Positions 8,994 through 14,685 are shown, counted from the stretch's first letter. The stretch: DNA of 64,000 nt from Adineta vaga (GCA_021613535.1 CP075496.1:9176001-9240000), one strand, 5' to 3'. The notes: generated by a model from the sequence alone, not told the origin. Translations and numbers: made by a program.

Positions 8994-11900
8994 ATGTCTC
9001 ATTTCAGCTCTCAAATATGCGATTCTGTAAAACCGTACCGTGATGTACGTCGTATTCAATTCGGTATTTTATCTCCGGATGAAATTAGACGAATGTCAGT
9101 AACAGAGCCATCAATTAAATATCCCGATTTATATGAAACGGGAACAGGAAAAGCAAAGCTTAACGGTTTAGCAGATCCGAGACAAGGACCATTAGATCGA
9201 AATTCGAAATGTCTTACTTGTTTTGGATCTTATAATGAATGTTCAGGACATTTCGGTCATATAGAATGTTAGTATATATATTTTTTTTTCATTCGATTTG
9301 TTTTATTTCTAGAAACATGACTATATAATAATTTAATTGTAATTCCATCTCTCATAGTGGTCAAACCAGTCTATCACGTTGCTTTTCTAACAAAAGTATT
9401 GAAAATTTTACGATGTGTTTGTTTCTATTGTTCGAAATTGTTGATCGATTCCAACGATCCACAACTCATTCAGATTATAAAAAATACGAAAAATCAACGT
9501 CATCGACGTCTAGCATATATAGTTGATAAATTTAAAAATCGAAAGAAATACAATGTTTCGAAATCAACTGAAGAAACAACCGATCAAAACGATGCAATTT
9601 TAAACCAGTTGAATTGTTGTGGGCACAAACAACCCATCTATCGTCGATCAGGATTGGGATTGACAATAAAATGGGAAGGAACAACTGTTGAAAGTCAAGA
9701 GATCGATTCAAAACTGACCGCGGCAAAAGTGCACGAGATTTTGAAATTCATTCCCAATTCAGTATGTGAAATACTTGGTATAGATCCTCGTCAATCACGA
9801 CCTGAATGGATGATTATAACTGTTTTACCAGTTCCTCCTCTATGTGTACGGCCATCAGTTTTACTATTTGGTACAGCACGTTGTCAAGATGATTTGACAT
9901 ATAATTTAGCACGTATTATCAATGCAAATAATACTTTGAGTGAAGCTGAACAATGCAGCGCATCGCCACATATCATAGATAAATATTGGCAAGATTTGCA
10001 AACTTCTTGTGCAACTTTAATTAATAATGATATTTCCGGCATGCCAAAACTGACACAAAAAGATGGTCGACCTTTAAAATCTTTGACAGAACGATTGAAA
10101 GGTTTCTGATTGATTCCTATAATTATATTATGAGGAATTTATCGGTTTTTTTTTAAGGTAAAGAAGGTCGTATTCGTGGAAATATCATGGGTAAACGAGT
10201 CGATTTCAGTGCAAGAAGTGTATGTGATAGATTTAAATTTATAATAATTTGAAAAATCGTGTCTTTCTCTTAGGTGATTACTGCCGATCCGAATTTAGCA
10301 ATTGACCAAGTTGGTGTACCACAATCCATTGCGCAGAATTTAACTGTGCCAGAAATGGTAACTCCATACAATAAAGATTGGTTACAAGAATTGATTATTC
10401 GCCGTGTAGCTAAACATATTATTCTTGAGGATGGTAGTCGAATTAATCTGAAATATCATCCTTGTCCATCTGATATTTCATTACAATATGGATACATCGT
10501 CGAACGACAAATGATGGATGATGATCTGGTCGTTTTTAATCGGCAGCCATCATTACATAAAATGTCTATGATGGCTCATCGTGTAAAAATTCTACCATGG
10601 TCAACATTTCGATTGAATTTATCAGTTACAACGCCTTACAATGCTGATTTCGATGGTGATGAAATGAATCTTCATTTACCACAATCATTGGAAGCAAGAG
10701 CAGAACTAGCACAATTAATGACAGTTCCACGTCTTCTCATTACACCACAATCGAATCGACCAGTCATGGGTATTGTTCAAGATACATTAACAGCTGTCAC
10801 AAAAATGACACGTCGTGATGTTTTTATTGATAAAAATGAACTGATGAATCTTCTTATGCACATTCCATCATGGAATGGAAAGATTCCACCAGCAACGATT
10901 CTTAAACCCAAACCACTATGGACGGGAAAACAACTGATCTCATTACTACTACCTCGTCAAGTCAACTGTATTCGAACACGTTCTGATGAAAAAGATGAAC
11001 AATCTTTCGAATGGATTTCACCAAGTGATTCAAAATTATTAGTCGAAAATGGTCAATTGCTTTCAGGCATTTTATGTACACAAACATTGGGACCGAATGC
11101 GGGTTCATTAGGACATATTATCTTTATGGAATGTGGCCATGATGTCGCAGGAAAATTTTATTCTTCAATGCAATTATTAGTCAATCATTGGTTATTAATC
11201 GAAGGACATTCTGTTGGTAAGATTGGTTTATTCTTTTCTTTTTATTAAAGTATAGCTTCATTGTTACTTTGTATAGGTATTAGTGACACAATTATTGATG
11301 AAACAACTACTGAAATCATTCATCATAGAATTGAACAATCCGAATATGAAGTGCAAAAATTGATTACAGACATTCGTACTAAGCAATCATCATTGAGTTT
11401 CTTCTCACGGCAATCATTCGAAAATACTATCAATGAACATTTGAATAAAGTTCGAAATGAAGCTGGATCATTAGCTCAAAAATCTCTTACAAATTTCAAT
11501 CAATTTAAAGCCATGGTCGATAGTGGAGCTAAAGGTAAAGCTCTCAATATTTTTCAAATTATTGTTTGTGTTGGTCAACAGAACGTTGAAGGTTTGTCTT
11601 AGTTCCATGGAGTTGGCTTTTTTTTTCAATAAATTATTGTTTGTGTTGGATATTTAGGAAAACGAATTCCATTTGGTTTCAAAGGGCGCACATTACCACA
11701 TTTTCTTCAAGATGATTATGGAGCAAAAGCACATGGATTCGTTAAAAAATCATATTTACAAGGTTTGACACCGGCCGAATTCTTTTTCCATGCTATGGGT
11801 GGTCGAGAAGGTCTGATCGATACAGCTATCAAAACAGCTGAAACCGGTTATATACAACGTCGTTTAGTGAAAGCAATGGAATCTGTCATGGTTAAATATG

Positions 11901-13940
11901 ATGGAACCGTTCGAAATCAAAATGAACACATAATTCAATTTGTTTATGGTGAAGATGGTTTAGCTGGAGAAAATGTTGAATTTCAATCCATTCTTTCATT
12001 ACAACCAGCTGATATAAGTTTTCAAAATTTATGTAAATTTGATTTACCGAATAAGAAAGAAGATTTACAACAATTCTTAAATTCAAATATTATTAATGAT
12101 CTCTTCTCCAATGAAGAATCTCTACAAGTGTTGAATAATGAATGGGAACAACTATGTCAAGATCGTAAACATCTTCGAGAAGTATTTCCACGTGGTGATA
12201 ATTCACGAATTGTTTTACCATGTAATATTGCACGATTAATTCATAATGCTCGAAAATTATTTCATATCTCGAAGCAAACACAGTCAAATCTTTCACCAAT
12301 CAAACTTATTCAAGATTTAAATAATCTAACTGAACGTTTGACTGTTATCAAAGGTACTGATTCTATTTCGCATGAAGCTCAATATAATGCTACATTGTTA
12401 ATGAACATTCTTGTTCGTTCATCACTTTGTTCGAAACAAATTCTTCAAGAACATCATCTAACAAGTGAAGCATTTGATTGGTTATGTGGAGAAATTGAAA
12501 CGCGTTTTCAACAAGCACAAGTACAACCCGGTGAAATGGTAGGTGTACTTGCAGCACAATCAATTGGTGAACCTGCAACTCAAATGACATTGAATACATT
12601 TCATTATGCTGGTGTTTCAGCAAAAAATGTTACTCTCGGTGTTCCTCGTCTCAAAGAAATTATTAATCTTTCGAAAAATCCCAAAACACCTTCGATGACT
12701 ATTTTTCCTGATGTTCATGTTGATAATAATGATTCGCACACTTATGCACAAATCATATCTCGTCTTGAAAATTGTACATTGAAGCATATCACGTTAAATT
12801 CGAAAGTTTATTATGATCCTGATCCAAGAACAACCGTCATTCAAGAAGATCAAAACTGGATTAATGATTATAATGAATTACCCGATTCAAATCATTTGCA
12901 AACATCTCCATGGTTATTACGTATTGAACTTGATCAAAGGAAAATATGTCATAAATTTTTAACAATGGAAGAAGTTGTCGAAAAACTTCCAAGAAAACTC
13001 TTCGATTGTGAGGGTGAAGATGATCTTCATGTTATTTACAGTGATGATAATGCCGATCATCTTGTTTTACATATCAGACTTGTTGATAAACCAAAAACGA
13101 TGAGTGATAATGAAAACATCTCCGAAGAAGATAAATCTACTCAATTAGATGACGATTCTCTTCTTCGCTTTTTAGATACTGAAGTATTTGCTAATTTAAC
13201 ATTGAAAGGTAAATAACTTTCTCTTACAGTAAAATCATTTTACTATGCATGATATCGTTTTTCTAGGAAACAAATCCATTTCGAAAGCATATCGCGTTGA
13301 AACGAAAACATTCGCTCCAAATGATTGGAGAAAACGATTTATTATTTCTGGTGAAGGAACTATGAAAGCAAGCGATGAACATTGTGTAGTAACGAATGGT
13401 TCTGCATTTCAATATGCTCTTACTATGAAAGGTATTGATTATCGTCGAACATATACAAATGATGTTATTGAAGTCTTCTGTGTTCTTGGTGTTGAAGCAG
13501 TACGTAAAGCTATTGAATATGAATTAAATCATGTGCTTTCATATGATGGAGCATATGTTAATCATCGTCATTTATCTCTATTATGTGATGTTATGACAAC
13601 GAAAGGACATTTACTACCAATAACACGACATGGAATTAATCGACAAGATTTTAGTCCAATCATGAGATCATCATTTGAAGAAACTGTCGGTGTTTTTATT
13701 GATGCAGCAGCAAATGCTGAATTTGATGCATTAAAAGGTGTTTCAGAAAGTATTGCTCTTGGTCAATTAGCAAAAATTGGTACAGGTACCTTTGATCTCT
13801 TTGTGGATATGAAAAAATGTCCATTAGCAATGGAAGTACTAACTACAAACATTAGTACGGTTAGCGGATACGACACACCACCTTTAGTTGCAACTACACC
13901 TTGGATAAAATCGATAGCAACGACTCCAAGTTATCAATAA
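8994..13940 (+). CDS. RPB1: Divergent DNA-directed RNA polymerase II largest subunit (body); exons 8994-9267, 9358-10101, 10158-10219, 10274-11216, 11277-11591, 11658-13208, 13267-13940
   Basis: [22 protein letters not shown] clamp Zn site, [31 protein letters not shown] active site, bridge helix [29 protein letters not shown], trigger loop [11 protein letters not shown]; all six introns are GT-AG and phase-compatible; TAA at 13938-13940. Confidence 0.95.
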
Positions 13941-14685
13941 ACACTTCTCTACTACAACAACTGCAACATCTATATTAAATACAAATTGTACGTATGTACC
14001 TACTTCACCAAGTTATACATCTTATCAACCACAATATTCTTCGACAACACCATCTTATTATAAGTATGTTTCTTTGTTTTATAAATGTGTATATTTGACT
14101 TGTAATTGATTGTGAAATAGTCCTACTAGTCCATCGTATAATTCAATGATGAGTCCTAATTATTCAACTGGTTCAATATCACCATATTATGCATCGATCA
14201 GTCCATCATACAGTTTGTTTTAAATTTTTCTTGATATTTAGATTATTTTGAAATATATGTTGATGTTTTCTTTTTCAAGGAGCAATTTCCCCTTCCTATA
14301 CATCATCATCGTATTCAAATCCAAGTTATTCGCCGACATCACCAGGAATTCCACGTATGAAAAGAATATTCTTTCTTCATTGATTTAGTATAATTTTGTG
14401 ATACATCTAGGCTATTCTCCAAAATCACCAATATATTCTCCAACTTTTCAAGGATTATCTCCATATAGGTTTGTTTATATATTTATTCTTTAAAGACAAT
14501 AATTAAGTTCTCGTTTCAATTTTCTAGTCCTACATTTTCTATTTATCAACCAAATATCGCTTCACCTCTAGATAGGTTTGTTTCTCATTGTCTTTTGTTT
14601 TGTACATTTCTACTAAATCTATTTTAGTCGATCATCAACGAATACTCCTGATGCACAGCTAGACGATACTGATGATTTACAATGA
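13939..14685 (+). other. RPB1: Degenerate RPB1 CTD in six small exons (13939-14063, 14121-14212, 14280-14354, 14411-14468, 14528-14575, 14628-14685), +1 out of frame with the body
   Basis: Spliced translation gives YVPTSPS, YNPTSPS, YASISPS, YRAISPS, YSPTSPG, YSPKSPI, YSPTFQG, YSPTFSI and acidic tail DAQLDDTDDLQ-stop; five GT-AG introns all keep this frame. Confidence 0.8.

Follow-up and report, generated by a model that had tools for sequence, protein, structure and literature searches.

The DNA analysed here is a stretch of 64,000 nucleotides from Adineta vaga (contig C4:9,176,001-9,240,000, hereafter the window, from whose first letter positions are counted), and our subject is a gene of the RPB1 type, encoding the RNA polymerase II (Pol II) largest subunit, at 8994-14685 on the plus strand. 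Our comparisons suggest that this gene is the A. vaga member of an old second RPB1 lineage and that its product is probably, with real room for doubt, a minor Pol II isoform that uses shared subunits, has a reduced C-terminal domain (CTD) and serves a subset of transcription. An earlier reading made from the sequence alone (the sequence-only reading) had described a divergent RPB1 paralogue with an intact catalytic core and an eroded surface and CTD, possibly the largest subunit of a lineage-specific Pol II derivative. What stands of that proposal is a gene that is old, expressed, constrained and distinct from the housekeeping copy; what speaks against the analogy with plant Pol IV and Pol V is that we find one RPB2 and few shared derived residues.

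The window copy is not the only RPB1 type in the genome. A whole-genome search (100.8 Mb, six contigs) found a second Pol II-type RPB1 at C5:15.92 Mb on the minus strand, 76% identical to the window copy in domains 2-3, and the Pol II-specific domain 6 (the foot, PF04992) occurs in only two genes in the genome, the window copy and the C5 copy. The C5 gene has a 1519-aa open frame with a long, near-consensus CTD (~25 YSPxSPx units, ~80 SP motifs) that PF05001 matches at 27.2 and 50.4 bits. The two proteins have 65% identity over an alignment of 1424 residues; by exon, identity is 76% in the active-site exon (exon 4), 57% in the clamp head (exon 2), 56% in the funnel (exon 5) and 57% in the C-terminal part of the cleft and clamp (exon 7). 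The presence of this canonical, long-CTD copy on C5 bears out the earlier view that the window gene is unlikely to be the housekeeping RPB1.

The gene and its transcripts

The gene model, derived from the sequence, has 12 exons and introns of 52-90 nt with GT..AG borders, in DNA of ~31% G+C. An exon-by-exon search matched Pfam Rpb1 domains 1, 2, 3, 4, 5, 6 and 7, all far above cut-off. All database searches were run per exon, and exons were joined across junctions solely to class variants and count motifs; the joined protein was neither searched nor folded. Contigs of four public runs were placed on 8900-14800, namely X9 (2024, RNA-type), X8 (2018, RNA-type), X2 (2015, DNA) and X19, and these, together with homologous paralogue loci (L020, L021, L023), give the following features.

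Exon 1, 8994-9267, plus strand: start codon and clamp core, first zinc site kept (CxxC...CxGH); open reading frame, Pfam Rpb1_1 and a GT donor at 9268.
Exon 2, 9358-10101, plus strand: remainder of Rpb1 domain 1 (clamp head, core), Pfam 219.6 bits, with RNA-type contigs over 9358-10098; the second zinc site is minus two cysteines in alignment to solved RPB1 chains.
Exon 3, 10158-10219, plus strand: 62-nt micro-exon, from the sequence reading and spliced contigs with 65 letters between 10098 and 10274.
Exon 4, 10274-11216, plus strand: Rpb1 domains 2 and 3, comprising the active-site domain (NADFDGD), the dock and the pore; RNA-type contigs over 10274-11215.
Exon 5, 11277-11591, plus strand: funnel (Rpb1 domain 4) with the funnel-loop deletion; the length of one spliced contig fits inclusion.
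Exon 6, 11658-13208, plus strand: Rpb1 domains 5, 6 and 7 (the cleft with its bridge helix and trigger loop, the foot and the jaw), including a 14-residue segment standing for DDYGPEAKGFVENS; RNA-type contigs over 11656-12610 and 12592-13206.
Exon 7, 13267-14063, plus strand: closing part of domain 5, then the linker and the first stretch of the CTD, with TAA 13938-13940 in the assembly; single contig 13265-14063.
Assembly-specific indels, 13936-13947: net +1 base in the assembly, giving a premature stop; X9, X8 and X2 contigs all differ.
Exon 8, 14121-14212, plus strand: CTD micro-exon of degenerate SP-rich heptads; joints 14063>14121 and 14212>14280 (X9, X8).
Exon 9, 14280-14354, plus strand: CTD micro-exon with the sole near-consensus unit, YSPTSPG, then IPR; joint 14212>14280.
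Exon 10, 14411-14468, plus strand: CTD micro-exon GYSPKSPIYSPTFQGLSPY; joint 14465>14525 (cut +3) in X9 and X8, homologous exon in L020, L021 and L023.
Exon 11, 14528-14575, plus strand: CTD micro-exon; acceptor confirmed by joint 14465>14525, donor placed from GT and frame.
Exon 12, 14628-14685, plus strand: putative acidic C-terminal tail ..DDTDDLQ with a TGA stop, placed from frame, AG acceptor and conservation, and lying outside RNA-type contig coverage.

Acidic tails stand at the same position in L020, L021, L023, L024 and the canonical gene. In alignment with the canonical C5 copy, NADFDGD and the trigger-loop core are identical and the bridge helix has two conservative differences, in keeping with the earlier description of these elements as near canonical, and all three are kept in every paralogue read. 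The canonical metazoan RPB1 (POLR2A; here the C5 copy) thus resembles the window gene in its seven-domain architecture, catalytic motif, near-identical bridge helix and trigger loop, and acidic tail. It differs in having 4 introns read, compared with 11 in the window gene, and in its ~25 YSPxSPx units and PF05001 match, where the window gene has a CTD of ~148 aa without a consensus heptad.

The window gene is transcribed and spliced. X9 and X8 contain spliced joints at 10098-10274 (the 65 letters between them being the 62-nt micro-exon), 13206-13265, 14063-14121, 14212-14280 and 14465-14525, and X2, the DNA run, lacks the three CTD joints. Contig word depth, which is a rough measure taken from assembled contigs, with canonical contigs recognised by loose ends, is ~11-20 for the window gene and 116-143 (X9) or ~490-740 (X8) for the canonical gene. 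The 2013 RNA-type run X19, labelled organism B, contains short pieces at 10534-10711, 12126-12436 and 13355-13547 that are identical or nearly identical to the window at depth 2. Carry-over, wrong labelling of the sample or a very closely related strain could account for them, and being short, near-identical depth-2 pieces, they were rejected as an independent source of an orthologue.

The assembly reads CAA TAA at 13935-13940; the frame ends at the TAA at 13938, and the CTD continues in another frame. If this TAA were real, the locus in this genome would be a pseudogene or would encode a CTD-less protein. Every covering contig (X9, X8 and X2, from three studies) instead has one additional base (T or C) after 13936 and two fewer bases at 13945-13947, and with these indels a single frame is restored, leading on from ..TTPSY to the first stretch of the CTD. 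Two intact variants, with either T or C inserted, occur in each of X2 (DNA) and X9 (RNA-type), and as both are found in X9, both alleles seem to be transcribed. Since all contigs lack the TAA, the window version is an assembly error or a private variant. With the downstream micro-exons open, bordered by GT..AG and spliced in RNA-type contigs as well, we regard a pseudogene or CTD-less protein as highly improbable.

Published tables of expression after desiccation and X-rays followed by rehydration (PMC10809525) contain two RPB1 loci, both split in the published annotation (FUN_017333 + 017334; FUN_020127 + 020128 + 020129); the main text of that paper makes no mention of RPB1. FUN_017333/4 covers domains 1-7 with no CTD repeat and has a mean count of 196 and a log2 change of +1.13 at 2.5 h, fading by 24 h (PMC10809525). 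FUN_020127/8/9, in three pieces and with a CTD repeat, has means of 307/672/3015 and log2 changes of +1.7 to +1.8 at 2.5 h, with ~+1.5 to +1.6 persisting at 8 and 24 h, where read (PMC10809525). In Tables S3, S5 and S8 the RPB1 counts and fold changes are fragmentary because the annotation splits both genes. The presence or absence of PF05001, the expression ratio and the sizes of the N-terminal fragments make it quite likely that the window gene is FUN_017333/4; the assignment to FUN_020127-9, suggested by gene order and strand, was rejected as outweighed by these three lines of evidence.

Age and constraint of the paralogue lineage

Relatives were sought by searching exon 6 (516 aa) against a large protein collection; because searches were per exon, relatives more than 1.75 times the exon length were not retrievable. 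The matches fell into two groups: fragments that match the canonical gene at ~89-90% identity, including one of Rotaria magnacalcarata, and sequences with 61-69% identity to the window copy and 63-77% to the canonical one, one of them from Rotaria sp. Silwood1. An exon 6 search of 50%-identity cluster representatives was discarded as useless for orthologues, with metazoan RPB1 collapsed and matches of at most 62% identity. In a maximum-likelihood tree (LG+C20, 34 rows), the bdelloid-type sequences form a clade supported at 100/100, which divides into a canonical clade with short branches and a paralogue clade of 12 rows (100/99) whose members include the window gene and the Rotaria sp. Silwood1 protein. 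Since the paralogue clade contains a Rotaria protein, the RPB1 duplication is older than the split between Adineta and Rotaria, and this second lineage is found so far only among bdelloid-type sequences. The end branch of the window gene (0.40) is the longest among the bdelloid-type rows.

Under GY+F3X4, codon alignments covering five or six loci of the paralogue type and three or four of the canonical type gave an omega (dN/dS) for the paralogue clade of 0.16 in the exon 6 region and 0.13 in the exon 7 region, and for the canonical clade of 0.047 and 0.042, respectively. The omega of the paralogue lineage is three to four times that of the canonical one, whose value is probably inflated by errors in two metagenome contigs. 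These estimates put the paralogue clade under purifying selection. In the two metagenome contigs, which carry RPB1 of the canonical bdelloid type, L025 (5887-5891 and 6310-6314) and L026 (8654-8658), the alignment blocks break at single codons, like in-frame stops, and L025 also has odd residues within conserved motifs; the breaks are likely sequencing errors.

For single branches, the ratio of branch length at codon positions 1+2 to that at position 3 is 0.49 for the window gene, 0.26-0.64 for the other paralogues and 0.11 for the C5 gene. The window branch has the highest absolute rate, its ratio is the second highest among the paralogue branches, and a rough conversion puts its omega at or below ~0.36. 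Pairwise Nei-Gojobori omegas of 0.2-0.5 were set aside as upper bounds only, with synonymous differences near saturation in an AT-rich genome. The window gene is constrained, far less than the canonical gene. Within the species, the contigs hold 22 coding variants, 12 of them synonymous and 10 non-synonymous. Among 207 exon 6 positions that are conserved in canonical and outgroup animal RPB1, 128 are invariant in the paralogue clade and 13 are relaxed.

The sequence-only reading had named, as what would speak against it, a recent, unexpressed copy with dN/dS near 1 and no orthologues in sister species. We find instead an omega of ~0.15 for the clade and, as a rough figure, at most ~0.36 for the window branch, spliced RNA-type contigs from two studies, and an old paralogue clade with a Rotaria member.

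Altered segments, CTD and genomic surroundings

The sequence-only reading had pointed to several altered peripheral segments, and all of them were recovered in our alignments. At the clamp-head zinc site, where solved RPB1 chains read LCKGKxICEG, the CxxC cysteines are replaced by F and Y, which extends the loss of one cysteine noted earlier to both. These cysteines are kept in paralogue L024, which makes their loss private to the A. vaga copy. Alignment with the canonical copy also shows the funnel loop LEPSPG to be deleted and a 14-residue segment to stand in place of DDYGPEAKGFVENS, both as had been claimed. The altered zinc site, the deleted funnel loop and the DDYG change are found in the A. 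vaga copy only, and other paralogues keep these motifs or vary them otherwise. Within the lineage the A. vaga copy is the most derived, alone in losing two clamp-head zinc ligands and part of the funnel loop.

RRVAKHII, also listed among the altered segments, is present but is not specific to the paralogue: the canonical gene reads RRNAAKYII, and other bdelloid copies are equally short. The canonical bdelloid RPB1 (L007, C5:15917000-15926999, minus strand; RRNAAKYII) lacks the GNSQYPG-type segment of other animals, the corresponding window positions being 10400-10440. This loss is a lineage-wide deletion beside the dock region, common to both RPB1 lineages.

The CTD of the window gene is 148 aa long and degenerate but rich in SP and Y, with 14 SP motifs, 2 YSPxSPx units and, as first noted from the sequence, not one perfect YSPTSPS. 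PF05001 gave zero matches when the three longest CTD stretches were searched at E up to 1, the exons being tested apart rather than joined, and no Pfam family matched the CTD exons tested. By direct reading, the CTD translations have no tryptophan and so no GW/WG motifs. The short CTD is clade-wide: five loci share the same series of micro-exons, with the motifs YSP[TA]SPxIPR and GY[ST]P..SP[IFV]YSP and an acidic end, and YSP[TA]SPxIPR is common to L020, L021, L023 and exon 9 of the window gene.

Among the shared polymerase subunits, RPB5 is present at two loci, C3:8046709-8046898 and C6:8360768-8360866, on homoeologous chromosomes (the C3/C6 pair), and RPB6 likewise at two, which lie together on C4 (3727871-3728029 and 1299839-1299991); these copy numbers agree with the copy table of PMC6264785. 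The homoeologous chromosome pairs of A. vaga are 1-4, 2-5 and 3-6 (PMC8494291), and the RPB1 copies, on C4 and C5, are not a homoeologous pair. In a collinearity comparison, the window and 110 kb around the C5 copy share nothing except RPB1. The upstream neighbour, at 7116-8153 on the plus strand, is a kelch-repeat gene with 7 Kelch_1 repeats whose family has ~200 matches in the genome, many with in-frame stops and concentrated on C1, C3 and C5; with that many matches this neighbour carries no synteny signal. The downstream neighbour is single-copy. Another window gene, at 5119-6309 on the plus strand (397 aa), has paralogues 70-72% identical at C1:14.99 Mb (the best one) and C3:14.25 Mb and 54% identical at C4:13.36 Mb, and no collinear block was found around the C1:14.99 Mb paralogue.

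Degenerate tetraploidy was reportedly established before the bdelloid families diverged, going by the title of Hur et al. 2009. The RPB1 pair is like the bdelloid homoeologue (ohnologue) pairs in age; it differs from them in its non-homoeologous contigs, its lack of collinearity and its very asymmetric evolution. The duplication may have arisen by tetraploidy followed by translocation, or in a separate event.

Competing readings and what they mean

In the reading that we favour, the window protein would most likely join the common Pol II subunits in a minor isoform of the polymerase. With its CTD reduced, this isoform would differ in how it contacts the machinery for CTD-dependent capping, splicing and termination, and would thus serve a subset of transcription units, cell types or stages. 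As the lineage has been kept for long under selection, a distinct biological role for the second RPB1 is plausible. A known system of this kind is RPB1b of Oxytricha trifallax, a development-specific second RPB1 lineage that predates species divergence within its clade and stands beside a constitutive RPB1a (PMC5312943). The window gene is like it in belonging to an old second lineage beside a canonical gene, but in Oxytricha RPB2, 4, 7, 10 and 11 are also duplicated and RPB1b is sharply stage-specific (PMC5312943), whereas here second loci were found for RPB5 and RPB6 only.

Several points weigh against a specialised isoform, whose role and assembly into a polymerase are both predictions. The contig depths point to expression roughly 10-40-fold below that of the canonical gene. 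Both RPB1 loci rise two- to three-fold after desiccation and X-rays (PMC10809525 counts), so that, whichever of them is the window gene, there is no paralogue-only stress induction and no distinct regulation is evident. With two of its zinc ligands gone, the clamp head could be less stable in the A. vaga protein. All three of the listed CTD coding variants are non-synonymous. Most rows of the paralogue clade come from metagenome or run assemblies, and species names stand on two tree rows, one in each clade. Finally, the paralogue clade shares a new residue at only 2 of the 207 canonically conserved exon 6 positions, which looks like relaxation rather than a remodelled surface, and the substitution pattern as a whole looks like relaxed constraint, mostly at the periphery, rather than redesign.

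Some of these points would fit a slowly decaying or sub-functionalised duplicate, which does the canonical job in some cells or at low dose and whose fast evolution and shrunken CTD come from weak selection on a low-expressed gene rather than from a new role; we take this to be possible but rather unlikely. The excess of relaxed over shared derived positions (13 versus 2), the low contig depth, a window branch that is fastest in absolute rate and second highest in ratio, the 10 non-synonymous against 12 synonymous variants together with those in the CTD, and the like response of both loci to stress all agree with such a copy, but the lineage has been retained since before the bdelloid families split with an omega of ~0.15 in at least five loci, its catalytic motifs are invariant, and its short CTD keeps exon layout and motifs across the clade. 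With retention as long as this, a purely redundant copy is not expected.

At the other extreme, bdelloids might possess a fourth nuclear polymerase activity, that of a derivative of Pol II which contains the second RPB1 (RPB1-B) with a minimal non-consensus CTD, maybe also the second RPB5 and RPB6, and is dedicated to a special class of transcripts. We consider this unlikely. The candidate transcripts might be non-coding or small-RNA precursors that arise from foreign genes or transposons, or those of germline or early-embryo transcription. Plant NRPD1 and NRPE1, of Pol IV and Pol V, are lineage-specific RPB1 duplicates with a remodelled C-terminus. Plant Pol IV and Pol V have many subunits in common with Pol II (PMC5312943), but they have a second-largest subunit of their own (NRPD2-like), whereas our genome search for a duplicated RPB2 gave a single Pol II-type gene, at C3:8.2 Mb; a match at C5:7.26 Mb is RPC2 by its PDB matches, and a weaker match on C2 is tentatively taken for RPA2. 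The plant enzymes also carry an Argonaute-hook (GW/WG) or DeCL-type extension, in contrast to the tail of the window gene, which is without GW/WG and whose tested CTD exons have no Pfam match, and the bridge helix and trigger loop of the window copy are fully kept. The Pol IV/V-type features examined are absent. In addition, several of the "eroded" features are private to the A. vaga copy, and one (RRVAKHII) is common to the canonical gene.

A non-catalytic role, e.g., binding Pol II partners as a scaffold or decoy and not transcribing, has a precedent in the transcription-independent role once proposed for a ciliate Rpb2 paralogue, which the Oxytricha authors judged less parsimonious (PMC5312943), but the strict conservation of NADFDGD, bridge helix and trigger loop across the clade is hard to explain without catalysis, and we think such a role very improbable.

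The minor-isoform reading matters because of the setting in which it is placed. Pol II subunits are encoded by single-copy genes in most species (PMC5312943), and the known lineage-specific RPB1 derivatives, those of plants and ciliates, run dedicated RNA pathways. In the literature searched, we found no paper that describes this RPB1 lineage, which appears there as a copy number (PMC6264785) or as unlabelled rows of expression tables (PMC10809525); the stop in the assembly and the split annotation of both RPB1 genes distort expression counts. Bdelloids combine long-term asexuality, heavy DNA breakage and much foreign DNA, and if the fourth polymerase were true, animals would have in it a counterpart of plant Pol IV/V or of ciliate RPB1b. 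The second RPB1 offers a natural experiment on the amount of CTD that an animal polymerase requires and a concrete candidate for specialised transcription.

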